NCBI RefSeq assembly: GCF_011386835.1
Contig: NC_088807.1
Coordinates: 19,406,139-19,470,000, forward strand
Source of the DNA: Chrysemys picta bellii
Lineage: Eukaryota
Direction: 5' to 3'
DNA: 63,862 nucleotides
A program made the position numbers and the translations under genes. Below, one piece after another: positions 2,939-52,904 of the stretch (its first letter is position 1; each line of letters starts with the position of its first letter). The notes under the pieces are model-generated. The model made no database searches, was not told the DNA's origin, and saw only the letters and a list, made by a program, of their open reading frames with translations.

Positions 2939-3438
2939 NNNNNNNNNNNNNNNNNNNNNNNNNNNNNNNNNNNNNNNNNNNNNNNNNNNNNNNNNNNNNN
3001 NNNNNNNNNNNNNNNNNNNNNNNNNNNNNNNNNNNNNNNNNNNNNNNNNNNNNNNNNNNNNNNNNNNNNNNNNNNNNNNNNNNNNNNNNNNNNNNNNNNN
3101 NNNNNNNNNNNNNNNNNNNNNNNNNNNNNNNNNNNNNNNNNNNNNNNNNNNNNNNNNNNNNNNNNNNNNNNNNNNNNNNNNNNNNNNNNNNNNNNNNNNN
3201 NNNNNNNNNNNNNNNNNNNNNNNNNNNNNNNNNNNNNNNNNNNNNNNNNNNNNNNNNNNNNNNNNNNNNNNNNNNNNNNNNNNNNNNNNNNNNNNNNNNN
3301 NNNNNNNNNNNNNNNNNNNNNNNNNNNNNNNNNNNNNNNNNNNNNNNNNNNNNNNNNNNNNNNNNNNNNNNNNNNNNNNNNNNNNNNNNNNNNNNNNNNN
3401 NNNNNNNNNNNNNNNNNNNNNNNNNNNNNNNNNNNNNN
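2939..3438. other. Assembly gap (500 N)
   Basis: Run of N. Confidence 1.
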
Positions 3439-3484
3439 TGCGGGCCGCTCTGGGCTCACAGAGGTACTTGCTTCTCACATGCAG

Positions 3485-6400: not shown

Positions 6401-9400
6401 CTGAGGCTCATTAGAGTGTATTGTCTTGGGCTGACCCAGGACACTTTCTGGGCTTAACCGAGGTGTCCTGGGTGAATTGCTACCACCTGGTGGCAGGATG
6501 AGGGACTCTTGTCTGTGATGTAGTTAGGTCGACACGGTGTCAGTGTAGACGCCGGGTTGCTCAAGTCATGTTACCGGCTTTCAGGTAGGGTGACCAGATG
6601 TCCCGATTTTATAGGGACAGTCCTGATATTTAGGAATTTTTCTTATATCGGTACCTATTACCCCCCACCCCCGTCCCGATTTTTCACACTTTCTATCTGG
6701 TCACCCTACTTTCAGGAGCCGTCCCACTATGCCCCACGCCGACAGTACAATGGATGCAAGCTTTCCTGACCGGGACGCGCACTGCTGACACAGCTGTGTG
6801 CTGACAGAATTACGTCATGTAGACGTGGCCTTAGAGGCATCTAGAGTCAAACCAAATTGAAGTTTATTTAACGGCGCTTGAGACCGATTCAAAGAAGGGT
6901 TGGCCAACATAAGGTTGCAGGGGAAAGTAAAACAGAACACGCCATCTTCAGCTTCTAGTTTATTAACAAGTTCCTTCCCTCTCTCCTGAGGTATTTCTCA
7001 CCCAAAGGTCGGTCCATATAACGCTTGTCCGGCTCGGAGAGCTGGGATTTCATGAGGCACTCATGCTGGCAAAATATCTCCTCTGGAACGATACCATCTT
7101 GTGCCCATTTCTTTTTCTCTTGTAGGATGGGGTGTGTCTACGTTTGAAACTCTACAATGCTTCAGGGAGGTGTCCTCACACCCCTGAGCTATGCAGTTAA
7201 GCGGACAGTTTTCTTGCCCTACAGTCTCATTCATTATCTTTTCATTTCATTATCTTCAGCTCAGCCCAGAGGGTCTCCTATTCAGAGTCTTTTCTTGGGG
7301 GTTCTTTTCTTTGTAAACGCTTAGGTGCGTACCTGCTCCAGCCTGTAAACCCAGCAGGGCTGGGTGGAAAGATACTTGATTGTTCTCATTCTCAACTGAG
7401 TTAGCCGAGACCCGCCCTGCCTCGGGGGACATGCTTCATCTCCAGCAGTTTCAGAACATAATATCCTACGTTTTAGGTATCACTTAAACTCCTTCCTGTA
7501 CAAACACCTCACGCTAGCCACAAGGATCGGCCAGCCCTTAGCTTTCAGCCCCCTTCGGTGACGTCTCAGGAGGGTGGCCAGAAGCAGGTGTAATATACCT
7601 GTCTGGGCACGTCCGCGTCACGCTCCCCAGCGACGTGGCATCTCCCACAGTGCAGCCTCCTATCCCCAAGAGCGGGGACCCTGGTGCACTGTGGGAGATG
7701 CAGTCCAATCAGGGAGGCTCTGCTGTAGGGTAGAATCGGGGGGGCATAACGCACCCCGGCGACTTTTCTGAATGGAAACATTTTGTTTTTTTAATGAAAA
7801 CTTGAAATTTTCCGTGGAAGATTTGGACAGAAACGACTGGCTTTGGTCTTTTTCTCTTGGGTAAAAGTGACTTGTTCTCATTTTTTACAAAAATGATTTT
7901 TTTTCCTGTTGTTATGTTGCCAAAATGACTCTTTTTACCCTCGAGTTTTCTCTTTTGTTGTTGTTGTTTCTCTTCTCTTTTATTTCCTTCCTTCCTTCTG
8001 TTTCTTTCTTTCTTTTTTTACCACCTTCCCCCCTCTTCTCTTCCCAGCTGGATCTACGCCCACTCCACCACCTCTGGATTCTGTTGGTTTTCCTTCGCCC
8101 GAGCTCTGGACCGGGCCCCACATGGACGCCCCTCCTGATGCAGCCCCCGATCCCACTCTGCCCCCCGTGGCTACTGCCTGCCTGGATCCCGCAGACGTAC
8201 CCCCGACATCAATGACAAATCCAGGTGAGGCCCCAGGGGAAGGTAGGCGCTGCCCACCCTGGAGGACTCTGGGTAGTTAGGATCCTGCATGTTATGAGTT
8301 GCTGATTCTCGGTCCAGTTAGAACAGGTTCAGCAGAGAGGCCGAGGGCTGGACCGGATCCAAAGGCTGCTCCCTCCATGCCCCTCCCTAAGGAGGCAGGC
8401 GCTGCCCCAGGGCATGCTGGGAAAATGTGGCCAATGGCCTGTCCATACCCTACCACCCAGCCGTCACTGCCATGGTGCATGCTGGGAAAACCTGGCCAAT
8501 GTCCACACATTGTCTCTCTGGGTGGTGCTCTCCAAGGGCATAGGTTTGGGGTCTTGTGGGCGGGAGGGGCTCCCCTTCCCGTTGCTCAGCACCGCCGTCT
8601 CCCTCCCTCCGTGCAGACTTGGGTGAAGTCTTGACCCACGTCTCTCACACTCTGAGATGCCACCCCAAGGGTATGAGGGTGAAGCCGCTGACGAAGAGGC
8701 TGCGGAAGGAGCATGGGGTGGACCTGTTGGCATTCAGCCAGGACGGGGGGTACCAGGGAGTCGTGTCCTTCCTGCAGGAGATGCCGGGTATCGAACTCTG
8801 GAACCCCGAGAAGGGAGAGAAGTGTCGTGTCCTGAGCTGTACCTTTAAGAAGAGTGAGTGGGGAGATGGTTTCTTGTAGGGCTGCCCCAGCCCGGCCCCC
8901 TTCCTGAATGTGGAGAGAGCCCCTGGCCAATGGCACACTGGCCTCTCCGCACCCAGCTGTGTCTCCCCCAGTGCATGCTGGGGAAACATGGCCAATGGCC
9001 TGTCTGTATCCTGCTGCCCAGTATCTCTCATGGTGTCTCTGTCTTGCCAGACGTCACAGACCCCCTGCCGCTGCTCTGCAGCACCCTGGGCTCCTTCCCC
9101 AATGGCCTGCGGGTCTTCAGTCTGAGGAAGGCCATGTGGCAGAGGCACGGGGTGAACTTGGAGGAATTCAGCCAGCAACAGGGATATCTGAGCACCCTGG
9201 ACTATCTGACCAGGCTGCGTGGGATCAGGCTGCAGGGGCTGGAGAGAGGGGAAAAGTGTCTTGTCCAGCTTCAGAAGGGTGAGGAGAGAGGGATACGGTC
9301 CAGGCGTCAGGGCTGAACTGGTCTTAGGTAGGATGAGGGCAGGTTATCCCACTGCTCACACCAATGGACATCCCGCATCTTCCTCTGAGGCCAAATGGAC

Positions 9401-12400
9401 TAGATGGCCCTTTGGGCTTCCTCCCCCATGAGATTTCATCTCCCACAATGCACTGTCCTACTGCCATCATGCACCACCTCCCGCCACCAAGAATAGAGGC
9501 TATGGTGCATTGTGGGAGATGTAGTCCGACCAGGGAGCCTGGGCTGTAGAGGAGAATGGCAGTCACAAGGCATCTGAACCACAACTCCCATGAAGCACCG
9601 CAGTGACTTTTCTAAATTGAAACAGCTCACTGAAAACTTGAAATTTTCTATGGAAAATCTGGAGCACAGTGAGTCCTTTTTGCCTCATGTTTTCTTGACA
9701 AGCGTGACCTCCCCCCCTCCACTTTTTTTTTTTTTTTTTTTTTGAGAAAAGCGACTTTTTTCCCTCACTCTTTTTTGACATCAGCCATTTTTTCTCTGAT
9801 TTTTGACAAAAGCGAGGTTTTTCCCTCCATATTTTTTTTTGACAAAAGTGACATTTTTCCATCTGTTTTCTTGACAAAAGTCACTTTTTTACTTCACATT
9901 GTTTGGCAAAAGCGACCTTTCCCCCCCTCTGTTTTTTTTTTTTTTTTTGAGAAAAGCCGCTCCTTTTTTCTCACATTGTCTTGACCAAAATTACTTTTTT
10001 TCCCCCTTCACGTTTTTTGACACGTGCAATGGTTTTCTCTCGGATTATTAACAAAAGCAATGTTTTCCCACAGCATTTTTTGACAAGAGTCGCTCCTTTC
10101 TTCCTCAGCTTTCTTCACAAACGGCGACTTTCAGTTTCCTCGGGCCTGGTCTACCCGTAAAACGTCGGTCGACGGAGCTGCGGCGTTCAGGGGTGTGAAC
10201 CAACCGCGCTTCTGAGCCCCGCAGCCTCGCTGCCCTGGCCCCGGAGTAGACTTGACTAGGCGGAGGATGAATGTGTCCGTCAATGTGGTTCCCGTTATGC
10301 GGGGAGCGAAGTTCCCCCAGCAAACCCCCGTTCCGGTGCTATAATCGGTGCGGCGGGGTTACAGCCCCGCAGACACGGCCCCATGGCTGCGCTGCTCTGA
10401 CGTCCGTAGTGTAGACGTGGCCTCAGGGTTTTTCGGACAAACTCGAGTTGGTTTTTTTTTCACTCCGATGTTTGACAAAAGCCTCCGTTCCCCACAGTTT
10501 TCTTCACCAAAGGGACTCTGTTAGCGCTTTCTGGGGGGACAGAAATATCTCCCCCCCCCCCCCTTTCTTCTGTTTGTTTTGCAAACGTGATGCTTTTCTC
10601 CTCAGTCTTTTGACCAAAAAATATGGTAGGAAAGGTGGAAGCGGCAGCCGGGCCTGTGCCCATTATGAGGGATAGCCGTGCCCGGTGGTGGGAGCTGGGG
10701 GGGGACGGGACATGCCCAGTGGTGGAAGCTGTGGGGGGAGGGGAACGTGCCCGGTGGCAGGAGCTGGGGGGCAGAGGCGTGCCCGGTGAGGACAGCTGGG
10801 GGGGTGAGGGACGTGTGGGGGCCGGGTGTACTTGTCTTTTCACTCCCACTGTGGTGCTCTTGTTTCTTCTCCCTTCCTTTAGGTGACGCTGTGAAGCCCC
10901 CTGCTCCGCAGCCCCCCCCAGACCCCGCTCCCCCATCGGCCCAGCCCAGCAGCAGCCCCCCGCCCGATGCCCCTGCCGACGGGGGGCCGACGGGAGCCCC
11001 GGGGGAGACGCCCGGTGAGCAGCTCTGCCGGCTTCTCAGTGAGGCCGCCGCGTGTGGGGCGTGAGCCTGGGCGGGGAGGCCGCAGCCCAAGCCAGGCCCC
11101 CCAACGCCACCTCCCATTGTCCCATAGCCTGAGCTCCCGTCTGCCCCCGTGGGGAAGGGCTCTGTGGGGCTCGGCGGCTGGTCTCTTTCCCTCACCCATC
11201 TCTGGGGGGGCTATGGGGCAGGGCACGTTGGAGGGAGATGGCTGGGGGTGTTGGGGGGGGAGTCTGTGGGTCTGTGTCGACGGGGGCTAGGTGTGTGGCA
11301 CCATTGCCATTTGTGGGGGACATCTTCGGGGCTGTTGGGTTCATGTTGGTGGGGGGGCTGGGGTTAGAGGGAGCGGGGTAGGGGGATGTCGGGGAGGCTG
11401 GGGATGCAGGGAGCAGTTTGGTGGGGTAGGTGGTTGTGGGGGGGCTGGGGATGGGGGAGCAGGTTGGTGAGGTGAGGGGTGGGGGGGATGGGGATGGGGG
11501 AGCAGGTTGGGAGCTGTGGGGGGGGCTGGGGATGGAGGGAGCAGGTTGGTGGGGTGTGGGGACTGGGGATGGGGGAGCAGGTTGGTGGGGTGGGGTTCTG
11601 TGAGGGGATGGGGGTGGAGGGAGCAGGCTGTGCGGGCTGTGTGTGTGTGGGGGTGCTGTGGGGATGCCTGTGGCCGGGATACAGGGGGTGGCTGGGGGGA
11701 CACACTGGCAGCGGACTGTGAAGAGTGGGGGGCAGCATGTGGGGTGCTCTCCTGGGCCCTGCCCCCGCTCTGGGGACGCCCGAGGACTCGGGCCCGGGGG
11801 CTGCCGAACAACCCCTCGCCCCCAGGGCCGGGTGCACACGCACAGGGTGCCCCATGACGGGGGGGCTCTCAGCTGGCGCAGGCTCTCACAGCCCCCCCAT
11901 CCCCCCGTCTCGTGGCAGGCTTGGCCGAGGTCTCGGCCTGGGTGCGGGACGTGCTGGGCCGTTTCCCGCTGGGGCTGAAGGTGGGCAAGCTGAAGGAGGC
12001 GCTGCGGAGCGAGCGTGGGCTGGACCTGGAGGAGCTGAGCCGTCTGCGGGGCTGCGGGGACGCCCTGCACCTGCTCCGGGCTCTGCCCCACCTCTGGCTG
12101 CGGGACCCGGGCCAGGGCGACGCCTGCCTGGCCCGGCTGGACGTGGGTAGGTGGGCAAGCGGCTGGGAGGGTGCCGAGCAGCTGGGCGGGAGCTGGGGTG
12201 AGATGCAGCTGGGGCCGTGGAAGGTGTGGGGAGGACGTGGCTTTTTACAGATCCAGACTAACAGGGCTACCCCTCTGACACTTGAGTACTTGTCGCACCT
12301 TAGAGACTAACAAATTTATTTGTGCATAAGCTTTCGTGGGCTAAACCCCACTTCATCGGCTGTATGTAGTGGAAAGTACAGTAAGAAGATATATATCATC

Positions 12401-15400
12401 TGTGGTGCATCCTTCTGGGTGTTGTCTTAATGCTGCCACATTTATTTTCAAAGAAGGTGTTTTCAAAAGAAGGTGCTCGCTTCTAACTCCCAAGGCCCTC
12501 AGTATGTCGGATCTTCTTTAATGAGCCCACTTGACAAGTTTTATTGTTCTTGGGTCTGGCTTCCATCCCCTCTCCAACTGTTGCAGCTGTCTGGAGGTGC
12601 TGCCTTCCAGGCCTTACCCATTCACACCTCGTTCATTCAACAGGGCAATTGATTAAAAGGGGGCAGATATTATTCTACTAGCGAAAAGACAGTTTTCTTC
12701 TACCTTAACTATCCTTAGGGGCTATAACATTATACCAAGGCTCAATACAAAGGGTACGTCCAGACTACCCGCCGTATCGGCGGGTAGCGATCGATTTATC
12801 AAGGATCGATATATTGCGTCTCGTTAACACGCGATATATCGATCCCCGAACGCGCTCACCGTCGACTCCGGAACTTCACCAGAACGAGCGGCGGTAACAG
12901 AGTCGACGGGGGAGCCGCGGCCATCAATCCCGCGCCGTGTGGACCCAAGGTAAATCTATCTAGATACTTCGACTTCACTACGCTATTCACGTAGCTGAAG
13001 TTGCGTATCTTAGATCGATTTCCCCCCACCCCAGTGTAGACCAGCCCAAAGTTTCTATATAAGGATTTGGTACAAAGTTCCCATATCAAAGGACTTGATA
13101 TAAAGTTGTATGAAAATGGAGGTTATATGTGGAAAGACTTGATACACCTCTACCCCGATATAACGCTGTCCTCAGGAGCCAAAAAAATCTTACCACGTTA
13201 TAGGTGAAACCGCGTTATATCCAACTTCCTTTGATTCACCGGAGTGCGCAGCCCACTCTCCCCCCCCCCCCCCCCCCCCCGGAGCGCTGCTTTACCATGT
13301 TATATCCAAATTCGTGTTCTACTGGGTCGTGTTCTAGCGGGGTAGAGGTGTACAAGGTTGTATGAAGAGGCATAATACAAAAGTCATATGAAAATGATGA
13401 AAACGATACGCAGTTACGCAAAGATGCTTAATGCGGAGATTTATCTACAGGGGCAGGGTACGGCCGGGCATGTGCCCAGGAGTGGGGGTTCCTGCTGTGT
13501 GTGTAGGGGGGAATTGGGGCACAACAGAGATTATGGGGTGTGGGGAGGCTGTTCCTCGTGGTGGGCAGCATGTGGGGTGCTCTCCTGGGCCCTGTCCCTG
13601 CTCTGGGGACGCCCGAGGACTCAGGCCCGGGGGCTGCCGAACGGCCCCTCGTCCCCAGCGCTGGGTGCATACGCACAGAGTGCCCCATGGCGGGGGGGCT
13701 CTCAGCGTGCGCAGGCTCTCACAGCCCCCCTATCCCCCCCGTCTCGTGGCAGGCTTGGCCGAGGTCTCGGCCTGGGTGCGGGACGTGCTCGGCCGTTTCC
13801 CGCTGGGGCTGAAGGTGGGCAAGCTGAAGAAGGCGCTGTGGAGCGAGCGCGGGCTGGACCTGGAGGAGCTGAGCCGTCAGCGGGGCTGCGGGGACGCCCT
13901 GCACCTGCTCCGGGCTCTGCCCCACGTCTGGCTGCAGGACCTGGGCCAGGGCGACGCCTGCCTGGCCCAGCTGGACGCGGGTAGGTGGGCAAGCGGCTGG
14001 GGGGGACAGCTAGGGCCGTGGAAGCTGGGGGAGTACGTGGCTGGGAGGGGGGCTCTGGTCCATGTGGGAGGGGGTAGGGTACGGCTGGGCATGTTCTCGG
14101 GGGGTGGGGAGGGGGGAGGCATGGCTGGGCATGTGCCCAGGGAGTGGGGGTTCCTGGTGGTGGGGGGTTAGCAGGGCACAACGGAGATTATGGGGTGTGG
14201 GGAGGCTGTTCCTGGTGGTGGGAGGCATAGGTGGGCCTGTTGCAGGGCAGGGGGCTGTGCCCGGGGGTGGGGAGCTAGGGGAGGGGAGGGGAGAGGGGGA
14301 CATGCCCAGTGGCAGGAGCTGGGGGAGGGGAGGGGGACGTGCCCGCTGGTGGGAGGGGGATGTGTGGGGGCCGGGTGTACATGTCTTTTCACTCCCACTG
14401 AGGTGCTCTTGTATCTTCTCCCCTCCTTTAGGTGAGGCTGTGACGCCCCCTGCCCCACAGCCCCCCCCAGACCCCACTCCCCCATCGGCCCGGCCCAGCA
14501 GCAGCCCCCCGCCCGATGCCCCTGCCGACGGGGGGCCAACGGGAGCCCCGGGGGAGACGCCCGGTGAGCAGCTCAGCCGGCTTCTCAGTGTGGCCGCCGC
14601 GTGTGGGGCGTGAGCCTGGGCGGGGAGGACTCAGCCCAAGCCAGGCCCCCCCAATGCCACCCCCCCATCGCCCCATAGCCTGAGCTCCCATTTGCCCCCC
14701 TGGGGAATGGTTCTGTGGGGCTCGGCGGCTGGTCTCTTTCCCTCGCCCATCTCTGGGTGGGCTATGGGGCAGGGCATGTTGGAGGGAGATGGGTGGGGGG
14801 CGTTGGGGGGTGTGTCTGTAGGGCTGTTTTGGCGGGGGCCAGGTATGTGGCACCATTGCCATTTGTGGGGAAAATCTTTGGGAGGCTGTCTGGTTTATGT
14901 TGATGCGGGGGCCTGAGAGGGGGCTGGGGTTGGAGGGAGCCTGTGGCCGGGGTACAGGGGCTGGCTGGGGGGGGGGATACTGGCAGCGGACTGTGAGTAG
15001 TGGGGGGCAGCATGTGGGGTGCTCTCCTGGGCCCTGCCCCCGCTCTGGGGACGCCCGAGGACTCAGGCCCGTGGGGGCTGCCGAACGGCCCCTCGTCCCC
15101 AGCGCTGGGTGCACATGCACAGAGTGCCCCATGACGGGGGGGCTCTCAGCGTGCGCAGGCTCTCACAGCCCCCCCATCCCCCCGTCTCGTGGCAGGCTTG
15201 GCCGAGGTCTCGGCCTGGGTGCGGGACGTGCTGGGCCGTTTCCCGCTGGGGCTGAAGGTGGGCAAGCTGAAGGAGGCGCTGCGGAGCGAGCGCGGGCTGG
15301 ACCTGGAGGAGCTGAGCCGTCAGCGGGGCTGCGGGGACGCCCTGCACCTGCTCCGGGCTCTGCCCCACATCTGGCTGCAGGACCCGGGCAAGGGCGACGC

Positions 15401-18400
15401 CTGCCTGGCCCGGCTGGACGCGGGTAGGTGGGCAAGCGGCCGGGGGGGTGCCGGGCAGCTGGGCCTATGGCGGGAGATGCAGCTGGGGCCCTGCCCGGTG
15501 TGAAAGGTCGGGGAGGACACAGCTGCGAGGGGCTGTGCTCGGGGGGGATAGAGGGGCACGGCTGGGCATGTGCCTATGGGGGGGCAGGGTACAGCTGGGC
15601 ATGTGCCCGGGGGGGTAAGGGTTCCTGGGGGCGGGGTTGCAGGGCACAGCTGGGGTTAGGGGCTGTGAGGAGGCCATGCTGGGCAGGGGGATGCATGGGT
15701 GGGCCTGCCCCGGGGCGGGGGGCCCTGTGCCTGCTGGCCGGAGGTGGACCCGTGGGGGCCTCGCGTCCCCCCCATTGAGGGGCTGTTTTGTGTCTTTTCC
15801 CCTCCTCTTCAGATGCTGCTGTTAATGCCCCTGCGCTCCCCGCCCCCTCCCATCCTGCCAAAGCGGGGGGGCCGGGTGCCGCGGGCCCAGCGAAGCGGAC
15901 GCAGAGCCAGCGTCGGGTGGCAAAGCCCGGCGCGATGGAGGCGTTGATCCGGGGCGCCCTGGCCCCCTACCCCTTTGGCATGCGGGTGAAGAACCTGCGG
16001 AAGCTGCTGGTGGGGAAACATGGAGCCGAGCTGGAGGCCTTCAGCCAGGCCAGAGGCTACGGGGACGTGGTCTCCTTCCTGCGGGATGTCCCCGGACTCA
16101 CGCTCCGGGGCCCAGAGAAGGGCAACAACTGCATCGTGTGGCTCCAGAGAGGTAGGGAGTGTGGCCCAGAGCGAAGCTCAGAACCCAGGAGTCCTGGCTC
16201 CCAGCCCCCCTGCTGTAACCACTAGCCCCCACTCCTCTCTCAGAGCCGGGGATAGAACCCAGGAGTCCTGGCTCCCAGCCCCCCTGCTGTAACCACTAGC
16301 CCCCACTCCTCTCTCAGAGCCGGGGATAGAACCCAGGAGTCCTGGCTCCCAGCCCCCCTGCTGTAACCACTAGCCCCCACTCCTCTCTGAGTCGGGGATA
16401 GAACCCAGGAGTCCTGGCTCCCAGCCTCCCCTGCTCTAACCACGAGGAATCTGCCATTACCAGCCCTGTGGGGTTAAAGGCCAAAGGGCAGAAAAATGTG
16501 ACACCAACCTGGGACCCTGACTCGCTCCACTCTGCCCTGTCACCCCTTTCCCCGTCCCACAAACGACCCCTGGCAGGCCGAGGGGGGAGGCGGGCTGTCA
16601 TTTCGGGGTGGGCAGTGAAGGCCCCATTCTGCCCTCTCCAGGGTCCCCGCATCCCCACGCAGCTTCCTGTCCCGGGAAAACAGCTGCCGGCATCCCCCAG
16701 GAGCCAGGGGTGGCCGACAGCTGGGACGCCGCTGACTGGGACCCAGAGTCTGCTGCTGCGCCGGAGAGAAGTAGGGTGACCAGATAGCAAATGTGAAAAA
16801 TCAGGAAACTTTTGGAGAGGGGAGGGTAAAACCCCTAATATTGGGATGTCTGGGCACCCTAGAGAGAAGTGAGGGGGCTGTGCTGAGCGGGGGGGAGTAA
16901 CCCATAGGGCTGCGTTGCCTTTGTTATATTCACCTGTAACCTACAGGCCCGTATCCCGTAGAGAAACGGCCCCACACTTGCCTCTAAGCTGCCGTGGCAG
17001 GAACAGGGAAGTGGTAACCGCAAAACCCGTTGGAGCCAGGGGTGACTGGTGCGGTGATGAATTAAAATGCCATCAGCCCGGTCCCTCCCCTCCCCTCCCC
17101 TCTCCTCCCATAGCCAGATTTCACGGGGCAGGTCTGATTTCACGGTCCATGACACGTTTTTCACGGCTGTGAATATGGCAGGGCCCCACCTATCGGATAA
17201 GTGCACCCGAGGAGAAGGGTGAGGAAGTTAGATTTGGGCACGGAAGGCCGAGCACTTGAATGAATCCTAGAACTGGCAGGGACCTCGAGAGATCATCTAG
17301 TCCAGTCCCCTGCACTCATGGCAGGACTAAGTATTATCTGACCATCCCTGACAGGTGTTTGTCTAACCTGCTATCAAGGTCAATTCCCCACTCTGGCACT
17401 TCAGGTGCAGAAAGTGGGGGCCGGCAAGGATTCAAACAATTAACACTGGCCACTCCAGACTTGTATTAAACTCCCAAGGTTCCAGCTTCTCTCTGACTTT
17501 GGCTGGGTAGATGCTGCCACCACCCAAATGCAAACCCCTTGAAACCCAGGAAGGTGCATTTGAGAATTCCTTCTCATGGGGTACCCTCAAGTCCTTTCAC
17601 CTCCCCCCCCCCCCCCCGGGGAAGAGCTGAGAAAGGAAATCAGCTGTTGCCACCAGCTAATTAAATAACATGCGCACAAACCTCTTAGGACACCAAAAAT
17701 CCAATCCTGTTCTTAAAAAGGGTAAATTTTATTAAAAACAAAAAGAAAGAAAATACATCTGGGAACTCAGGCTTTTGCCAGATTTAAATAACCCACTTAC
17801 AAAATTTAAACACCAAGAATAGCCTTCTTGAGGTGCAGCTTAAAGGTCACAAGCAAAACAAAACACATTTGGGTTTAGCACAGAGGAGTCCACAAGCCAA
17901 TAAGAAATAACCCTAATCGCGTCTTCCTAGACATTCCCTAATTTACTTACATTTCTGGGGTTTCAGGTAAGCAATCTTTAGGTATGATCTGATGGTTTTT
18001 CATACCTGGTTTAAAGCTTCTCACAGCATAACTGCTTCCTGTTCCCCTCTTTCCCGGAGAAACACAACAGGGACAAAGGGAAGTCTTTTCCCAATTTTAA
18101 AACGTTCTAGCCTCCCATTGGCTCCTTTTACCTGCGGGCTTGTTAACCCTTTACAGGAAAAGTAGGTAGAGAACAACCACGAAGAGGGATTCCACAGCCA
18201 ACTGGCTGGCTGGGTGTCTACAAAAGGGAACTACCTCCTCCTCCCTCATTTATCACACCTGCTCTGAAAAACTTCCAATGATGCTGATTCCACAACCTCC
18301 CTGGGCAATTTATTCCAGTGCTTAACCACCCTGACAGGAAGTTTTTCCTAATGTCCAACCTAAACCGCCCTTGCTGTAATTTAAGCCCATTGCTTCTCAG

Positions 18401-21400
18401 GGGTTAATGCGAATTTTCTCCCTCCTCTTTGTAACAGCCTTTTATGGACTTGAAAACTTATCACCTCCTCTCTGTTTTCTTTTCTCCAGACTAAACAAAC
18501 CCGTGGTTTTTTCAATCTTCCCTCATAGCTCATGTTTTCTAGACCTGAATCATTTTTGTCGCTCCTCTTTGGACTTTCTCCAGTTTGTCCACAACTTTCC
18601 TGAAATGTGGCACCCAGAACTGGACCCAATACTCCAGTTGAGGCCTAATCATTGCAGAGTAGAGCGGAAGAATTATTTCTCGTGTCTTGCTTACGACACT
18701 CCTGCTAATACAGCCAAGAATGATGTTTGGTTTTTTTGCAACAGCGTGACACTGTTGACTGGTATTTAGCTTGTGATCCACCATGACCCCCAGATCCCTT
18801 TCTGCAGTACTCCTTCCTAGGCCATCATTTCCCAGTTTGTATGTGTGCAACTGATTGGTCCTTCCTAAGTGGAGCGCTTTGCAGGGTCCTTATTGAATTT
18901 CATCCTATTGACTTCAGACCATTTCTCCCGTTTGTCCAGATCATTTTGAATTTTAGTCCTGTCCCCCAAAGCGCTCACAACCCCTCGAAGGGTTATTCAT
19001 GATAGCATTCGGGCCCTGTAATAGGGCCAACCACCGTGTGGAGGGGGCTAGCTGGCCGTCACTTGAGCCACCTTCTCTATTGTTATCTGCTGTCCCTCTT
19101 GAGCGTTGAGGAACCTGGACCATCAGACCTTTGTCTCTGCCCACCAGGCCCTCGAGGAAGGGTGTGAGCATGCAGATTTAGTAGGTACTCCAGATATCTC
19201 CAATACTGTATTGTTCCTCTCTCGTTATGAGCTTTTCTGGCTTTATTGCTGATCTTAATCAAAATCGCCACGGCTTTGCTTTGCCTCCGGTGCGCGTGTC
19301 CTTGCCAGACACCCCGAGGTTCCCACCAAGATTTCGAACTCCTTGGTATTAGCCTGATTCTGGGACAAGAACCTTATTCCCACTGGATCAGTTGGCCATC
19401 AGTACAAGTATTGTTAACGATGAATAGGATCGGGCGACGCTCCCTGCCCGGGTGTGTATGACGGGCCAAACCGATCACCCCGGATCCCGGAGTTGGGGGG
19501 GTGCGGATCCGAATGGGCCAGAATCCAGGGAATAGCTAGAGGCCAGTGAGAGGATGTGTAGGGGCTGCCCCCTAGTGGAGGGTGGGGGAATTGTAGCCTG
19601 TGTGCTGGAAGAAGTGGGGTGTAGCTGTTTTTTCCCGCCCCCCCACACCTAGGACATAGGAAACTCAGATTCATCCCTTCCCCTGGAGCCAGCCATTCCC
19701 TGCCCTGGGGCCAGGTGGGAGCTGGTGCCCCCAGAGGGGAAAAGGCCCCATTCCCCACCCCTGACCTTGGCGATCTTCCTTCCCTCGGCCTCTGTGCAGG
19801 TGCGACTGAGGTCCTGACGCTGCTCAAGTGCTTGCTACGCCCATACAAGTCTGGCCTGCAGCTGCAGAAGCTGCAGGAGTTGCTGCTGGAGAGACACGGG
19901 CTGGATCTGAAGCGGTTTGTCAGCTCCCAGGGCGAGGAGGACGTGCTCGGATTCCTGCAGAGGCGCCTGCCCGCGCTGGAGTACAGGCAGCCGGAGAAGG
20001 GAGCGAAGTGTATCGTCTGGCTGGGGACAGGTACGATGGGGTGTGTGTGGGGGGGAGAACGGGACAATAAATCCCACTCAGAGCTGGGAACAGAACCCAA
20101 GAGTCCTGGCTCATAGCCCCCTGCTCAAACCACTAGGCCCCACTCCCCTCCCAGAACAGGGGAGAGAACCCAGGAGTCCTGACTCCTCCTGGACTGGCTG
20201 TCAGAACTCCATTCCACAGGCCAGAGCCCTGCCCCCAGCTCTCCATGGGGCCATTGCGGGTAGCTGAGACCTGGATTCCTTATTGTCTGACTCTCCGGCT
20301 GTGGGGCAGGCCGCGGGGTTCCCCCCCCAACTCACCCATGGCATAAACCCGCCTTTGCTCCCGTGCATCGTGGGAAAAGTCCAGGCGGGTCCAGAGCGGG
20401 ATACAGGCAGAGCGGTAGCTGCCGTGCATGCTGGGGGATGCCACGTGCCTGTTACCCACCCTGACGGCAGTTTTCCCCCCCCTCCCCCCAGGGCAGAAGA
20501 AAGGCTCTGGATCTTTGCCCCCTGGCAGTGCCCGCCCCTTGCCTGGCTCCAAGAGGTGCCTCCTCCCAACGAATGCCGCGGAGCGCCCGCCCCAACCCGC
20601 CACCGCCTGCCTCAACCCCCGGCTGCCCAGTGCTACCACCAACCGGCCTCTGCTTCCCAGCCTGCCTTCGGCCCGGGAGCCCTTCCGGGCCCCTGCCGCC
20701 CAGGGAAAGCTGGGAAAGTCCCCAGGGGCCAACCCCCGCCTCCCAGCCTGGTTACGGAGCCCACCCCGGCCCACCGGCACCTGCTCAGGCCTACGAACAG
20801 AGGAGGGGACCCACGAGTCCAGGACCAGGCCTGCCAGCGCCCCCTTGGTTCTGCGAGCAGAGGAGGGGACTCAGGAGTTCGGGGCCAGGCCTGCCAGCGC
20901 TCCCTTGGCCCTGCGAGCAGAGGAGGGGATCCAGGAGTCCGGGGCCAGGCAGGCCAGCGCCCCCTTGGTTCTGCAAGCAGAGGAGGGGACCCAGGAGTCC
21001 AGGGCCCAGCCCCCTGAGGACCTGAGGGAGCTGAAGCGGAAGGTGGGGGCCATCCTGGCCGGGCACCCCGGGGGCATGTCCCTCTTCCAGTTCCGTGCCG
21101 CGTACAGCGCCGCCCACCAGCACCCGCTGCCCCTGGGCTGCACGGCCTCCACCAAGCAGCGGCTGGCGCAGATGCCTGACGTGGTGAGGATGCAGGGCTG
21201 CGGGGTGCAGATGCTGCTGCTGCCAGTGGACCCCGACGGACCCCCCAGGGCAGAGCCTGGTACGTAACGGGGGGTTGGGGGGACAGCTGCCTTGCAAGGT
21301 GTGGGGGAGATATTAAGGGGCTGGGCTGGGTCCCCCCCAAGGGATGTGTGATTGGGGGGGGGAGGTCAGGCTGGGTCCCCTAAAGGGGTTGATGGGGCTT

Positions 21401-23197
21401 CCCCCACCCAGATGTTAAGGCCCCGAACCATCGGCCACTCTGTTGTGGGCGTAGGAACAGGGCCAGCCCAGCGCTACGGGCCAGAGGGTCCCGTTGTGAC
21501 TGGCTCGGCTGGTCCTCCTCCTTCCCAGCTCTCCCTGTGGCGGGACGTCTCCCACAATGCCCTGCTGGGACTGCTTGCTGTGTGGCCCAGACCTTCCCAG
21601 AATGCACTGGGGCATAATGCACAGCGGGGCGGGACGTTTCCCAGTATGCATCGCTGGTGCCACGCTGCATCCCATTGGCCCAGGCACGCTGGGCATTTCC
21701 CAGAATGCACTGGGGCAGGTGACGCATCGAGGGTGGGGGCAGGACTCTGTCGCCCCCTGCTGGTTGGTCCGGCTCAGAGGATAAAACCCTCCAGCCGCTG
21801 CCGGCTGAGGGAGCTCCCCCACCAGCCCAAGCAGCGTCTAGTGCTGAGCTTGGCAGGCCCAAACCTCGCGGGCAGGGGCAGGGGCGTGGCTCAGCTGTGG
21901 GGGTGGCACCGGGCTCTGTCAGTGGGATTTAACTGGGTTTGTTTTTCAAGGTCTCGCCCTGTGGATCCCACAAGAAGCTGCTGCCCTGGCTGGGGACACC
22001 GACGACCCATCTGAGCCCCTTCCCACCCTGGCCGAGATCCCTCCCGTCCCAGCAGCTCCCGACCTGACTGGGGACCCCGACACCCCAGCTGAGTCCCCTC
22101 CCACCCTGCCCGACATCCCTCCAGTCCTCACAGCTCCCGACCTGACTGGGGACCCCGACACTCCATCTGAGCCCCCTTCCTTCCCGGTAGCTCCCGACTT
22201 GACTGGGGACCCCGACTCCGCAGCTGAGCTCCCTCCCACCCTGCCCGAGATCCCTCCAGTCCTCACAGCTCCCGACCTGACTGGGGACCCCGACACTCCA
22301 TCTGAGCCCCCTTCCTTCCCGGCAGCTCCCGACTTGACTGGGGACCCCGACTCCGCAGCTGAGCTCCCTCCCACCCTGCCCGAGATCCCTCCAGTCCTCA
22401 CAGCTCCCGACCCGGCTGGGGACCCCAAAGTCCCAGTCAAGCCCCCTCCCACCTTCGTGGCTCCGAGATGGGGGCCGAGCCTCCAGGCCATGCAGCGCCC
22501 AGAGGCTGCCCGACCTGAAGCCAGCTGGGAGTTACCTGACTTGGTGCCCAGCGCCCCCGTGGTTCTCCCAGCATCGGGGCCGTGCAGCAGGTCGTGGCTC
22601 TGGCTTGGGGCAGAGTCCCCCCTCGCCCCGGCTGATCCCGGTGCTGCTGCTCGCCCGGTCGTGTACCCTCCCACCCGGGAGGTCCCCCCGGCCCCCGCTG
22701 CAGCCCCAGAGTCGCCCTCCCTGTGCCCAGCGGCACCGGGGCCACCCCAGGCCCGGCTCAAGCGGGTCCAGTTGGTGCCTCCCTTCCAAGACCACCCTTT
22801 GGCTGGGGATGCCTCTCGGGCACAGCCGGTCCCTAAAGCCGTGGGTCAGAACCAGGGCACATCAGCGGCTGTGGGATCCCCTGTGGGCCCGATCCCTGCA
22901 GATCCATCCACGGGCCAGGCCGTCTCCCCTATTAAGCAGCTCTCAGGGGTGGCCCCGGATCCCCTCCCTCCTCCAGAGGCCAGTGTCTCAGCGACCCCCG
23001 AGCAGGGCTGGCCAGACACCGGGCGCCCTGGTTCAGGTGGAGATATCGGCTCTCCTGTTGACCCCTTGCTGCGCTGCCATCCGGCCCAGCCGGTCCCCTC
23101 TGCAGGGACGACCCCGCCGGGCCCGTGGGCCGGGATCCCCTCGGCCCCACCGGCCCACTCGCCGCCACACCACACCGACACCTGCATTCTCCTATAG
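3485..23197 (+). CDS. Gene A: uncharacterised multi-LOTUS (OST-HTH) protein, 8 intact LOTUS exons plus Pro-rich linkers and C-terminal CaaX (CILL); ~1,600 aa if all exons are joined; start exon not found
   Basis: AG/GT-bounded exons: 3485-3658, 4675-4851, 5577-5756, 8048-8224, 8617-8853*, 9051-9278*, 10883-11014, 11919-12146*, 13753-13980*, 14432-14563, 15196-15423*, 15813-16151*, 16642-16770, 19800-20030*, 20492-21259* and terminal 21951-23197 (*=LOTUS). Every internal exon is phase 1-1, a multiple of 3 and stop-free. AATAAA at 23295-23300. Confidence 0.72.
5085..5340. repeat. 63-bp minisatellite (~4 tandem copies; further single copies near 5940-6050, 8410-8500, 8920-9000)
   Basis: Unit CATGCAGGGAAAATGTGGCCAATGGCCTGTCCATATCCTACCACCCAGCCATCTCTGCCCCAGGG. 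Confidence 0.9.
6087..6313 (+). pseudogene. Decayed LOTUS exon (duplicate of 9051-9278)
   Basis: Near-identical to 9051-9278 but 1 nt shorter (ctacagggctgg vs ctgcaggggctgg), which shifts the frame. The donor is mutated from G|GTGAGG to G|ATGAGG at 6314. Confidence 0.75.
6586..6708. mobile_element. hAT-family MITE
   Basis: TIRs TAGGGTGACCAGAT / ATCTGGTCACCCTA with an 8-bp TSD CTTTCAGG (6578-6585, 6709-6716). Confidence 0.9.
8617..8853 (+). CDS. LOTUS/OST-HTH exon, gene A (79 codons)
   Basis: gtgcag|...|gtgagt. VSHTLRCHPKGMRVKPLTKRLRKEHGVDLLAFSQDGGYQGVVSFLQEMPGIEL fits the LOTUS pattern (L..hP.G..l..L......G.dL.....GY..l..fL..mP.v.l). Confidence 0.82.
9051..9278 (+). CDS. LOTUS/OST-HTH exon, gene A (76 codons)
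   Basis: ttgccag|...|gtgagg. LCSTLGSFPNGLRVFSLRKAMWQRHGVNLEEFSQQQGYLSTLDYLTRLRGIRL. Confidence 0.78.
11919..12146 (+). CDS. LOTUS/OST-HTH exon, gene A (triplicated, copy 1)
   Basis: gtggcag|...|gtaggt. VRDVLGRFPLGLKVGKLKEALRSERGLDLEELSRLRGCGDALHLLRALPHLWL. Confidence 0.8.
12252..12380 (-). mobile_element. Penelope-like retroelement terminal fragment with a degenerate minimal hammerhead ribozyme motif
   Basis: gagtacttgtcgcaccttagagactaacaaatttatt... is the end sequence I recall for turtle PLEs. The minus strand 12321-12364 reads CCGATGAA-GTGGGGTTTAGCCCAC-GAAA-GCTTATGC-AC. Confidence 0.65.
12752..13047. mobile_element. PIF/Harbinger-like non-autonomous element
   Basis: Imperfect TIRs GGGTACGTCCAGACT / AGTGTAGACCAGCCC, a 3-bp AAA flank on both sides and a CpG-rich, partly palindromic interior. 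Confidence 0.6.
13145..13350. mobile_element. Tc1/mariner (Tigger-like) MITE
   Basis: TIRs CACCTCTACCCCG / CGGGGTAGAGGTG flanked by TA on both sides. Confidence 0.8.
13753..13980 (+). CDS. LOTUS/OST-HTH exon, gene A (triplicated, copy 2)
   Basis: Same splice sites and length as 11919-12146; 10 substitutions by eye and no stop. Confidence 0.78.
15196..15423 (+). CDS. LOTUS/OST-HTH exon, gene A (triplicated, copy 3)
   Basis: Same splice sites and length as 11919-12146; intact frame. Confidence 0.78.
15813..16151 (+). CDS. Linker + LOTUS/OST-HTH exon, gene A (113 codons)
   Basis: ctcttcag|...|gtaggg. LIRGALAPYPFGMRVKNLRKLLVGKHGAELEAFSQARGYGDVVSFLRDVPGLTL. Confidence 0.83.
16772..16861. mobile_element. 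hAT-family MITE inserted at a splice donor of gene A
   Basis: TIRs TAGGGTGACCAGA / TCTGGGCACCCTA; 8-bp TSD GAGAGAAG (16764-16771, 16862-16869). Confidence 0.88.
17258..18960 (-). mobile_element. 5'-truncated CR1 LINE, interrupted by a solo LTR
   Basis: ORF 18539..18850 (DLGVMVDHKLNTSQQCHAVAKKPNIILGCISRSVVSKTREIILPLYSAMIRPQLEYWVQFW) is the CR1 ORF2 C-terminus. The 3' end lies near 17258. Confidence 0.9.
17372..18257 (-). mobile_element. Solo LTR (Gypsy-type) inside CR1
   Basis: TA(TG)TC...ATCACA ends with a 5-bp TSD CCTGC (17367-17371, 18258-18262). Related to the 42742-44798 LTR in the opposite orientation. Confidence 0.8.
19800..20030 (+). CDS. LOTUS/OST-HTH exon, gene A (77 codons)
   Basis: ctgtgcag|...|gtacga. 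LLKCLLRPYKSGLQLQKLQELLLERHGLDLKRFVSSQGEEDVLGFLQRRLPALEY. Confidence 0.8.
20492..21259 (+). CDS. Pro-rich + 20-aa repeat + LOTUS exon, gene A (256 codons)
   Basis: ccccag|...|gtacgt. Three to four copies of RAEEGTQESGARPASAPLVL, then LKRKVGAILAGHPGGMSLFQFRAAYSAAHQHPLPLGCTASTKQRLAQMPDVVRMQG. Confidence 0.82.
21951..23197 (+). CDS. Terminal coding exon of gene A: acidic/Pro-rich repeats ending in CaaX (DTCILL*)
   Basis: Acceptor tttttcaag| at 21950; the phase-1 frame is continuous with ORF 22199..23197. Stop TAG 23195-23197; AATAAA 23295. Confidence 0.78.
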
Positions 23198-26100
23198 CCA
23201 CCGCTGGCAACTCGGGCTGGTGGCTCTGGGGTGGAGCAGGTCGGCCTGCGGCCAACTCAGCACAACGCCCGGAGCTCTGCAGGAGAGGTCGGGAAATAAA
23301 CCCCTGTGATTTCTCGAGCAGGGGGCACTGGGGCATTTCAGCCCCCCCACCCCAGTCTCCTGGGCACTGGGGCTTTTCTCCCCCCAGGACTGATCTCTTT
23401 ATCTAGTGGACTTGAAAACGTTGGCTTACAACTCTAAAGAAGCGGCCACTGACTATTTTCAGTGGGAGATGGCTTAATTTGAGGACTCCCAACTCCAGAC
23501 CCGCCCTGAGACCCCCCCTCCATCGAATCACGAGTGCTCGTTGGTTCTGGAAACCAGTCGTGGCTTTTCAACCGACTGTTGCCCCAAACCGGTGGCCACT
23601 TGCCGAAATCGGTGGCCAGCCACCAACGTCTCAGGGAAAGCGGCCTGCGCTCCGTGTGCAGCATTGACATTTTAGCGATTAAATTTTCTAACAAGCGCCA
23701 GCCAAAGCTCCCGTGTGGTTTGGTTTCGCCGGCGTCTCTCGAAGTCGCGGGCGCCTGTAACTCTTCGCTTGCCGCGGCTTCGCTTGGCCTCTGCCTTTGT
23801 TCCGGCGACCGAATTACTTCTGCAGCGCCAGCAGGTGACCGCGGGGGCGTCGCTTTGCCGCTCCGTGCCTCGGTTTCCCCAAGCTGCAGGATGGGATTAA
23901 TGATCGTGACCTGCCGGGTAAAATGTACTGATTGTTTTGACATGTACTGATGAAAAGCCCTTCCCAAGCTGGAGGGAGGGAGGGGGAGAGAGAGAGAGAG
24001 AGTGTGTGTGTGTGTGTGTCTTTGCAAAATCTCCCACAATGCACTGGAGGGGCAGTGTGAAGGGGAATCAATTGTCCATCCCCCTCACCCCCTAGGGGCC
24101 ATGCCCGAGACAGAGCGCCCGCCCCTCTGCCCACTGAGCCCAAAGACAGCGTCTGCCCTCCAAGACAGATCATCCCCCAACACAGGAATTTTGGTGCTTA
24201 CTGCCCCCCCCATCCCTGGAGTATCTGTCCCATGCCCCCCCTCCCAGAGCATCTTCACATCCTTCCCCCAAATCTCCCCCCATGGGGCTCAGCTTGATTT
24301 AGCCACAGGCTATTCCAGGCCCTACTCATTGCATGTGTAGGGGGGGAGCCAAACTGGGAGGGGGGCTTGAGGTGCCCCCTAGCCTCCCCCATGGGAGTTT
24401 GAGGTGGACAGGCCGTGGTGGGGGATCTATCTCATCTAGCTCCCCCGCCCCCCAAAGAGTCAGAGCTGGGGGGGGGGTGTTTTCCCACCAACCATCTCTG
24501 TTAAGCGGGGCAGCTCTGGCCTGGGGGTGTGTGTGTGAAGATCGGGGGGGGCAGAGGGAAGGAGAGGCAGTGCCCCTCCCCTGTGGTCATGGGGCAGGTT
24601 CAGGAGCTGGGAGTCTGAGGGGGGCAGTAGGGCTGTGGGGGGTGTGTGGATGAGGTGTTTGGGAGGGGCAGATGGGGAGGAAGCTGGGGCGGGGCTCTTT
24701 CCCCTGTAGCCATTGTCCCCCCCCCCCCCCCAACAGTCGGCCATCTTTGCTGTGGGCAGCATGGCCTCAGATTTCCACCGTCCCCCTTTTAGGCACTGGG
24801 TTCTAGAGAGACCCCTCCGTCGCCCCTTCTTGGCCCGGGCCGTTAGGTGCCAGGCGGGGCCCTGTGGGTTGTTTCACTGGGGAACAGAAACAGATGGTCT
24901 GAATCTTGTGTTTCCCCCCTGGTGCTGTCCCGTTTGCTTGCGAGGAAGGTGTGCCGAATCCCATTTCCAGCGGGACCAACCAACCACAGGCAGATGTCTC
25001 CTTCCTCACAATGTCGAGTCCACCTTCCCCGTGGGTTCTGGGCCCACCAGAAGCTCACTCTTCGCTGGCTTTCTGCTCTCTTTCGTGCCGCTTGTTAAAC
25101 CAGCCCATGGTCCCTGGGTTAGTTATTGCTGCCTTGGGCAGTGACTTCTTCTGTTTACAGTATCACTGGCATTTAATTGCTCCTTCTTTATAGGTCAAAG
25201 CCTGGCTTCATTGAATCTAAGCCCAGATGGGACCATTGGGATCACCTAGCCCGACACAGGTCATAGGGTTGCCCTGAAATAACTCCTGTGCGAACTAGAG
25301 CAGATCTTTTAGGGAAAGGGCCCATCTTGATTTAAAAATGGCCACTGATGGGGAATCCATTGGTCATTCGGGTGGTTAATTCCCCTCCCTAGGAACAATT
25401 CACACCTTCTTCCCAGTCGGGATGGGTTTGGCTTCAATGTCCAGCCGTGGGGTGGTGTCAGACTAGACTGAATCAACGATTATCCCATTTCCCTTCCCCG
25501 TGGGGTCCTATACCCTTGGGCCCCTCTAATCCCTCCATCTCTCTGCGTGGCCAGGAGGCTGGACCCAGGCATGTGGAGCAGAGAATCTCTCGGGGGGCAA
25601 GCCCCTTGGGAGCACAACCACCCCGGCCCCAAACACTCCTGCTAATGGCTGCACCCCAAGATTGAACCCCCAACCCTGTGAGAGCAACTGCCCCTGAGCT
25701 GGGCATGTTGGGCTCCATGCGGAGCAGCCACTGGAAGGAGCTGGGGTATCGGGGGAGGGGGGCCGAGGGTGAGTTTAGGGAGAAGGTTCGGGGGAGGGGG
25801 CCTGAGGGTGAGTGTGGGGGGGCAGGTTTGGGGGCAGGGGCCCGGGCAGGCTCAGAGGAGGGGGGCTGGGCTGCACAGGGGGCAGGCTCGGGGGAGGGGG
25901 CCCGAAGGTGAGTTTGGGGGGGCAGGCTCGGGGGTTGCAGGATCCCATGGCAGCCCAACCAGTCCGGCAGGTTCGTGTTATCTTGGCGCTGGGGCCTGGG
26001 GATTCTGGTAACAACCATCCGGCTGCCAGGCCCTGCACCTGGCTCCCGCCCAGATCCGGGATGCTGCCGGCGGCGGCTCGGTGCCAGGGGCTGCCAGGCA

Positions 26101-52100: not shown

Positions 52101-52904
52101 TGCCGGGGCAGATCCAGGTGCCGGCCATGGTGCTGGTGGAAGAGCCTCCCGAAATCCCACAGGGGGACACCCCCTGGGTGGCTCAACAGTAGCCCCAGCA
52201 CGGCCCCCTGGAGGGTCAGCTGCGAGCCGGGATCCAGTCCCCCCCCCGCAACAGCTGGAAGGAGAAACAGCTCTTGGGGGGCTCAAAGGGCACCAGGTGG
52301 GAGACTTTACCCTTCACTGGCCACCAGGGGGACTCGCCCACAGAACAGCAGAGGGGTGGGCCTGGGCACAGCCAGGGTACCAGGGTAGATGGGCCCCTGC
52401 TCCAAAGTGGGAGAGAAATTCCCTGCACACAGTGGGACTGCAGGTCAGGACTAAGGGTCTCATCAGCAGTGGACAACTGGGGGGGGGGCAGCCCCCCTCC
52501 CCAGAGCCACTGGGCCCCACTCCCCTCCCAGAGCTGGGCATGGAACCCAGGCATCCTGGCTCCCAGCCCCCCCCCCCGCTCTAACCACTAGACCCCACTC
52601 CCCTCCCAGAGCCGGGGATAGAACCCAGGAGTCCTGCTGGCTCCCAGCCCCCGCCCCCCGCTCTAACCACTAGACCCCACTCCCCTCCCAGAGCCAGGGA
52701 TAGAACCCAGGAGTCCTGCTGGCTCCCAGCCCCCGCCCCCCGCTCTAACCACTAGACCCCACTCCCCTCCCAGAGCCAGGGATAGAACCCAGGAGTCCTG
52801 CTGGCTCCCAGCCCCGCCCCCCCACTCTAACCACTAGACCCCACTCCCCTCCCAGAGCCGGGGATAGAACCCAGGCGTCCTGGCTCCCCGGTTTCACCTG
52901 CCAT
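49147..52904 (-). CDS. Gene C: uncharacterised protein with two LOTUS (OST-HTH) domains, a Pro/Ser-rich tail and polybasic CaaX (KRKPPKHKPDQCVLL*); 585 aa, complete
   Basis: Exons 52904-52898 (GAGGCT-ATG-GCA-G|gtgaaa), 52254-51895*, 50876-50337*, 49997-49147 total 1758 nt, in frame; all introns are phase 1. LOTUS1 AVLGLLLSHPGGVPLWDFGRLFHQHHGRHLDLPRHGYRSLHHLLGDMKELVVL. LOTUS2 LEQNVARVLRGHPGGISLFRFRQAYGAAYSHPFPLDSSASVKEQLAAMPGAVRVEG. Confidence 0.82.

Follow-up and report, generated by a model that had tools for sequence, protein, structure and literature searches.

A putative geranylgeranylation box at the C terminus of a multi-LOTUS protein family of turtles and other jawed vertebrates

The stretch of DNA analyzed here (the window) comprises 63,862 nucleotides of the Chrysemys picta bellii genome (contig NC_088807.1, positions 19,406,139 to 19,470,000 of the forward strand). 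It contains a gene, designated gene A, that encodes about eight LOTUS-like domains followed by a 414-residue Pro-rich tail, and the tail ends in Cys-Ile-Leu-Leu, a box of the CaaL class (Cys, two aliphatic residues, Leu). The box is very probably real and under selection. Judging from its sequence, we give a probability of about 0.7 to the reading that it is geranylgeranylated and acts as a membrane anchor; the further step, that it tethers an RNA or ribonucleoprotein (RNP) scaffold, is tentative.

The C termini of gene A and its paralogue gene C

Window positions 23171–23197 on the forward strand read CAC ACC GAC ACC TGC ATT CTC CTA TAG, which translates as HTDTCILL-stop. This bears out the preliminary description of the window, which had placed a CaaL ending on gene A at 23174–23197 (TDTCILL-stop). 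The Cys codon, TGC at 23183–23185, lies exactly four residues from the translated C terminus, in a frame that is confirmed through two spliced introns, and the box has an aliphatic residue at position a2 and Leu at position X, as the CaaL class needs. The transcript evidence consists of contigs from four RNA-type runs, belonging to four studies and two organism labels, that were placed on positions 17550–23549. In all four runs the GT..AG joints 20030/20492 and 21259/21951, which have canonical donor and acceptor sequences, are seen, and the contigs are unbroken from 22397 across the stop codon to past 23549. The open spliced frame from 19798 to 23197 has 748 codons, the last four encoding CILL, and no sequence difference from the window was found at these codons in any of the runs. 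The preliminary description had allowed for the exon being internal or read in another frame; the contigs of the four runs place the box in frame in a terminal exon. The features at this end of the gene are as follows.

21951–23197, forward strand: coding part of the gene A terminal exon, a 414-residue tail with 25% Pro (acceptor AG at 21949–21950; joint 21259/21951 in four runs)
23183–23194, forward strand: CaaL box of gene A, Cys-Ile-Leu-Leu (TGC ATT CTC CTA; read from the sequence, identical in transcripts of four runs)
23195–23197, forward strand: stop codon TAG of gene A (sequence and spliced frame)
23198–23700, forward strand: 3′ untranslated region of gene A, about 500 nucleotides (nt), end approximate (contigs extend 100–150 nt past 23549)

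The terminal exon runs from 21951 to beyond 23549 in the contigs and is 95% identical to residues 1116–1530 of the Malaclemys terrapin protein. Upstream of the box the tail is of low complexity and fast-evolving. An ATTAAA at 23678 adjoins the contig ends near 23650–23700; the AATAAA at 23295 (98 nt downstream of the stop codon) is unlikely to serve as the poly(A) signal, as the contigs read through it and it is absent in Mauremys. The coding sequence contains tandem repeats of 60 nt × 3.5 (20794–21006) and of 78 nt × 2.5 and 135 nt × 2.9 (21985–22426), at which transcript contigs break and the gene models of other species go wrong. Chrysemys isoforms that end in ...PDLTWGPRLRS were considered as an alternative 3′ end and rejected. 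Their ending is frame 0 of the 135-nt repeat and so stems from a frameshift in the model, with no separate exon.

Among the 3207 stop codons in the six frames of the window, four are preceded by C-aliphatic-aliphatic-[LF], and two of these four terminate paralogous tails, at 23197 on the forward strand (gene A) and at 49150 on the reverse strand (gene C). It is therefore very unlikely that gene A acquired its CaaL ending by chance. The matching motif that the preliminary description had assigned to gene C is present, at the end of a reverse-strand paralogue, as listed below.

49150–49998, reverse strand: terminal coding exon of gene C, ending SKRKPPKHKPDQCVLL (open reading frame (ORF); canonical acceptor)
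49150–49161, reverse strand: CVLL codons of gene C, with the stop codon at 49147–49149 (sequence)
50335–50877, reverse strand: gene C exon with a LOTUS domain of the type that comes last in gene A, 51% identical to that of gene A (profile match of 104.4 bits; canonical donor)
51893–52252, reverse strand: gene C exon with a LOTUS domain that passes the Pfam OST-HTH cut-off (34.6 bits against a cut-off of 23.8, E 1.7e-8; tblastn with the Emydura protein)

Within the window, the last-type LOTUS domain is confined to genes A and C, and in both it is followed by one intron and a Pro-rich exon that ends in CaaL. The two tails are only ~25–29% identical, yet the box closes both of them. Gene C has in addition a basic stretch, SKRKPPKHK, ahead of CVLL. 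Its orthologues in Gopherus and the side-necked turtle Emydura, together with a 54%-identical Logan transcript, retain both the basic stretch and CVLL, and the duplication that gave rise to genes A and C is therefore older than crown turtles, with the box retained in both copies since.

Conservation of the box and identity of the LOTUS domains

The preliminary description had suggested conservation of the motif in orthologues as a check, and it was found in turtles and in a family that extends from sharks to crocodilians. The orthologues of gene A in 13 turtle species retain the box as C-[IV]-[ILF]-[LI], with conservative substitutions; their endings, with that of one transcript, are given here.

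CILL: Malaclemys
CVLL: Gopherus, Chelonoidis, Mauremys mutica, Pangshura
CIIL: Chelonia, Caretta, Natator, Eretmochelys, Lepidochelys
CIFL: Dermochelys
CVIL: Carettochelys
CVII: Macrochelys
CRLL: Logan transcript

Crocodilians and lizards retain CIIL, CILL or CVIL. Identity to the window tail falls to 44% in Carettochelys, 33% in the alligator and ~25% in lizards, with the box persisting, and the tails of snakes, lungfish and coelacanth have nothing that can be aligned to it. The extent of the family was assessed with a profile search of 1.84 billion representative sequences, which gave 89 matches; the taxonomy of the family was taken from 30 representative clusters that were looked up and from the named matches of a search seeded with an alligator protein. 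Members occur in sharks, gar, coelacanth, lungfish, salamanders, frogs (including Xenopus laevis), snakes, lizards, crocodilians and turtles; no mammal, bird or teleost member was among those seen. At the weak end of the matches are TDRD5 proteins, together with a small number of entries of bacterial or metagenomic origin. All family members seen are labeled "uncharacterized" or bear an automatic name driven by composition, and we reject the names "PRR36-like," "Titin," "mucin-2-like" and "RpfA-like" on that ground. In one Alligator mississippiensis model, KYO23532.1, a family member is joined to "germ cell-specific 1-like protein 2," which suggests that GSG1L2 neighbors the family locus in crocodilians.

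A CaaL ending (C-x-[ILV]-L) is present in 41 of the 61 representatives that have at least 100 residues after the last LOTUS domain and in none of the 28 with shorter tails, which appear to be truncated models. When the last four positions of the 41 CaaL representatives are tallied, Cys at position −4 being the criterion by which they were selected, position −1 is Leu and position −2 is Ile, Leu or Val in every one, and position −3 varies among C, V, I, R, S, L, N, A and G.

Compared singly with Pfam, the exons of gene A give no match at E 0.01. OST-HTH appears below threshold at E 0.06–0.12, and at E values up to 10 only weak OST-HTH and DUF7515 matches are found, so the LOTUS identity of gene A had to rest on a family profile and a fold model. 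Full-length orthologues pass Pfam for OST-HTH and/or DUF7515, with a score of 57.6 bits for DUF7515 in a full-length orthologue. A profile of 29 sequences of the last domain matched TDRD7 (E 5e-8) and TDRD5 (E 4e-7) among Protein Data Bank (PDB) sequences. An AlphaFold2 model of the last LOTUS domain of gene A has a mean confidence (pLDDT, predicted local distance difference test) of 82.7 and ends in a disordered Pro-rich stretch. In a Foldseek search of the PDB with this model, the top 28 matches were all LOTUS domains (TDRD7, Tejas, TDRD5, Oskar and MARF1; template modeling scores by target of 0.60–0.86), and among Swiss-Prot models ranks 1–26 were all TDRD7, MARF1 or TDRD5; Foldseek found no reviewed protein sharing the fold besides these three. 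The profile matches and the predicted model thus confirm a winged-helix LOTUS fold and support the LOTUS label that gene A had been given at the outset.

The nearest relatives by sequence are TDRD5 and TDRD7 (Tejas and Tapas in flies), which have an MPDVV motif in common with the family. Unlike them, the six full-length family members that were compared with Pfam have no Tudor domain, and in the alignment the N-terminal LOTUS domain of the family has no counterpart of the conserved helix found after the hairpin in the TDRD5 rows. A C-terminal α5 extension after the β-hairpin is needed for Vasa binding, and the helix of such an extended LOTUS (eLOTUS) domain can form on binding only (Jeske et al. 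2017, PMC5458760). The extension was not found at the two LOTUS positions compared, the last and the N-terminal, which is a weak negative that leaves the internal copies outside the comparison. These two positions therefore look, in model and alignment, like the minimal, MARF1-like type and not the Vasa-binding type. MARF1 resembles the family in being large and in having a tandem array of about eight LOTUS domains, and the array of the family appears to be of the same minimal type without the Vasa-binding extension. In contrast to MARF1, the six full-length members have no NYN nuclease or RRM by Pfam, and the family has a long Pro-rich tail and a CaaL box; to our knowledge, MARF1 is not lipid-anchored. 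One TDRD5 match in the family search has no CaaL box, and another match ends in ...NFGHC.

The preliminary description had drawn an analogy with RNA-granule scaffolds. Its LOTUS part stands; its germ-granule part is weaker than had been implied, because neither of the two LOTUS positions has the Vasa-binding extension, and Pfam finds no Tudor domain.

Exon structure of gene A and other features of the window

Gene A extends from ~3481 to 23197 on the forward strand in about 12 exons, most with one LOTUS-like domain each. The exon map was made by tblastn with the Caretta (1435 residues) and Malaclemys (1530 residues) models, and the proteins closest to gene A are turtle proteins.

3481–3630, 4674–4850, 8056–8223, 8592–8855 and 9050–9280, forward strand: upstream exons of gene A, approximate (tblastn homology)
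11921–12148, 13755–13982, 15198–15425 and 15791–16149, forward strand: further upstream exons of gene A, approximate (tblastn homology)
19798–20030, forward strand: gene A exon with a LOTUS-like domain, …LQLQKLQELLLERHGLDLKRF…CIVWL (contig pieces start at 19798 and splice at 20030)
20492–21259, forward strand: penultimate exon of gene A, with the 60-nt repeats at 20794–21006 and the last LOTUS domain at ~21010–21250 (joints; profile match of 119.5 bits)

Most of the upstream exons, from 3481 to 16149, carry one DUF7515/OST-HTH-like domain with weak single-exon Pfam matches, and the end at 16149 was placed by a loose contig end. Three of these exons (11921–12148, 13755–13982 and 15198–15425) are 80–95% identical and are recent duplicates. 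Recent internal duplications involve 11.7–15.6 kb and 5.5–6.3/8.0–9.3 kb, all on the forward strand; a copy of the 9050–9280 exon at 6086–6321 changes frame near its end and may be a pseudo-exon. The intronic segments 18150–18950 and 20120–20350 (forward strand), where contig depth is in the thousands with many unrelated loose ends, are interspersed repeats that are abundant in transcriptomes.

Three LOTUS-like exons, designated "gene B," lie on the reverse strand at 40349–40080, 38828–38586 and 37690–37439, and the last two are near-duplicates. No last-type LOTUS domain or CaaL tail belonging to them was found within the window. In the 2013 Chelonia draft, an ab initio model joins exons at 40.3, 38.8 and 37.6 kb to the LOTUS exon of gene C; we reject it as transcript evidence for such a joining, since it is ab initio only. 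The "gene B" exons may be a gene of their own, a set of alternative 3′ exons used by gene C or a copy in decay. At 54700–57405, immediately upstream of gene C and likewise on the reverse strand, lies an open 902-residue ORF of retroelement origin; Pfam identifies in it a SCAN-like gag domain, a CCHC zinc knuckle and a zinc-binding domain of the integrase type, with no reverse-transcriptase match listed. A peptide-like signature, ...GSQDSWVLS..., recurs on both strands across the window, which is GC-rich vertebrate DNA with a single run of N at 2939–3438.

Predicted prenylation, alternative explanations and meaning

Geranylgeranyl transferase type I (GGTase I) recognizes Cys, a variable residue at a1, an aliphatic residue at a2 and Leu (or Phe) at X. 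The last-four pattern of the 41 representatives fits such a box in its sequence and is the opposite of that of a PDZ ligand. The same boxes are found in known proteins: RhoG ends in CILL, Cdc42 in CVLL and PDE6-β in CCIL, the last being similar to the ending of brain Cdc42, and K-Ras4B has a basic stretch ahead of its CaaX box. The family thus shares with the C termini of Rho and Ras proteins both identical box sequences and the logic of a second signal, a basic stretch or an adjacent Cys, but carries them on a non-enzymatic multi-LOTUS protein of 1300–1700 residues and not on a small GTPase. Second signals of this kind are the basic stretch of gene C, that of the lungfish protein (KKKKNSCVLL) and the double Cys of CCIL. 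CCIL is found in 11 representatives, and those of them that were looked up are frogs; gene A lacks any second membrane signal. A basic stretch with CaaX directs Ras and Rho proteins to the plasma membrane, and in these proteins the lack of a second signal is associated with endomembranes or with a need for a chaperone. By analogy, the differing signals among family members suggest that the paralogues may go to different membranes.

No transmembrane-like segment was found among the 19-residue windows of genes A and C and their orthologues (maximum Kyte-Doolittle value of 1.69, in Ala/Pro-rich sequence; the family tails are 22–25% Pro), which leaves the CaaL box as the only membrane anchor in evidence. 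TDRKH, PLD6/MitoPLD and GASZ, which use transmembrane or tail-anchor segments, would share with the family the concept of an RNA-pathway scaffold on a membrane surface. In contrast to them, the family has no transmembrane-like segment and would rely on lipid, and the likeness to the piRNA pathway is conceptual only.

In the proposed mechanism, the gene A product would be a large cytosolic protein with ~8 LOTUS (winged-helix) domains, a long disordered Pro-rich tail and a functional CaaL box. By the standard CaaX pathway, (i) GGTase I would attach a C20 isoprenoid to the Cys of the box, (ii) the three residues after the Cys would be cleaved off and (iii) the new C terminus would be carboxyl-methylated. 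The lipid would then hold the protein at the cytosolic face of a membrane, and the flexible tail would let the LOTUS array reach RNA or RNA-protein partners. As to the cargo of the array, RNA binding is the more likely guess because the LOTUS domains look minimal-type.

Several observations weigh against prenylation and anchoring. A motif match is by itself no proof of modification. Twenty representatives with long tails lack the box; these include outgroups (TDRD5 and bacterial proteins) and also paralogues, for example two salamander proteins and a second alligator gene. CVII in Macrochelys is a weaker match to the GGTase I rule. The annotated Mauremys reevesii protein misses the box, as the preceding 120 nt are net 13 nt shorter and the frame is shifted. 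The DNA of this species still ends in ...HTDTCVLL-stop (its 5222–5328 compared with window 23080–23199). The shortening is possibly an assembly error, because Mauremys mutica is in frame, or a recent lineage-specific change. The annotated M. reevesii protein continues in the other frame into a downstream exon that matches window 23767–23928. As regards the gene itself, the RNA nature of the four runs is presumed from size and splicing, and the upstream part of the gene A model, with its approximate exon borders, comes from homology.

Three other explanations of the ending were weighed. One is that the box is prenylated but mainly farnesylated, or that the lipid serves protein binding or chaperone handling (by RhoGDI or PDE6-δ) instead of stable tethering of an RNA scaffold. 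Either enzyme can prenylate certain CaaX proteins, and membrane binding through one isoprenoid by itself is weak and reversible, so that the lack of a second signal in gene A and the terminal Ile of Macrochelys could be read this way. However, all 41 representatives have Leu at X, and among the determinants known for GGTase I this is the strongest. A basic second signal, which is usual where membrane binding is stable, is present in gene C and in the lungfish protein. We consider this explanation unlikely. Slightly less probable still is an unlipidated C terminus that functions as another recognition motif (for example a PDZ ligand, a sorting signal or a C-terminal degron). Its hydrophobic character and, within clades, the partial conservation of the residues just before it are noted (D at position −6, PPP[KR] in sauropsids, WQT in the CCIL-type members of frogs), as might be expected of a longer motif, but the distance from the Cys to the end is exact in every member. 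In a PDZ ligand the residues recognized are those at positions 0 and −2, whereas here the residue at PDZ −2, which is a1 of the box, varies (R, S, N, G and C are among those present) and the Cys at PDZ −3 and the aliphatic residue at PDZ −1 are invariant. On this position-specific pattern we reject the PDZ reading.

The remaining explanation is that the ending is a functionless product of chance, of gene models or of pseudogene decay. There are four such endings by chance in the six frames of the window, the assembly of one species is frameshifted ahead of the box, and some Chrysemys models terminate inside a tandem repeat. Against this, spliced transcripts carry the box in frame, it is kept from sharks to turtles in tails that are otherwise unalignable, and the Chrysemys model ending is nothing but the repeat read in frame 0. 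The conservation of these sequences largely refutes this explanation, which we regard as by far the least probable of the three.

Geranylgeranylation and membrane anchoring thus remain our preferred reading, and the preliminary interpretation is borne out in each part that can be checked against sequence. LOTUS arrays and CaaL boxes are each known, and their combination and the family itself are undescribed. A search for LOTUS proteins with prenylation, CaaX, farnesyl or geranylgeranyl found, apart from two incidental co-occurrences, no paper in the library searched that describes a prenylated one, in agreement with the remark of the preliminary description that none was known, and no mention was found of the locus identifiers of the orthologues. 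We propose, with less than even confidence, that the proteins form a fourth ancient LOTUS family of jawed vertebrates beside TDRD5, TDRD7 and MARF1, held by geranylgeranyl groups, with paralogues on different membranes and an array that gathers RNA or RNP. The lack of a second signal in gene A, the basic stretch in gene C and the double Cys in frogs would, just as provisionally, be the marks of this division.

LOTUS proteins (Oskar, TDRD5, TDRD7, MARF1 and the worm MIP/EGGD proteins) organize germline RNA granules or control maternal mRNAs, and how LOTUS assemblies are positioned beside membranes is an open question in the field. If the proposal is true, the family would be a lipid-anchored, RNA-organizing scaffold, a mode of tethering undescribed for any LOTUS or germ-granule protein, and the first LOTUS family with a covalent lipid anchor. 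The presence of the family in laboratory animals (Xenopus laevis, axolotl and Anolis) makes the idea directly testable. GGTase I matters for germ-cell guidance in flies (review PMC12005264), and LOTUS proteins, if prenylated, would be a new class of candidate substrates for this enzyme in vertebrates.

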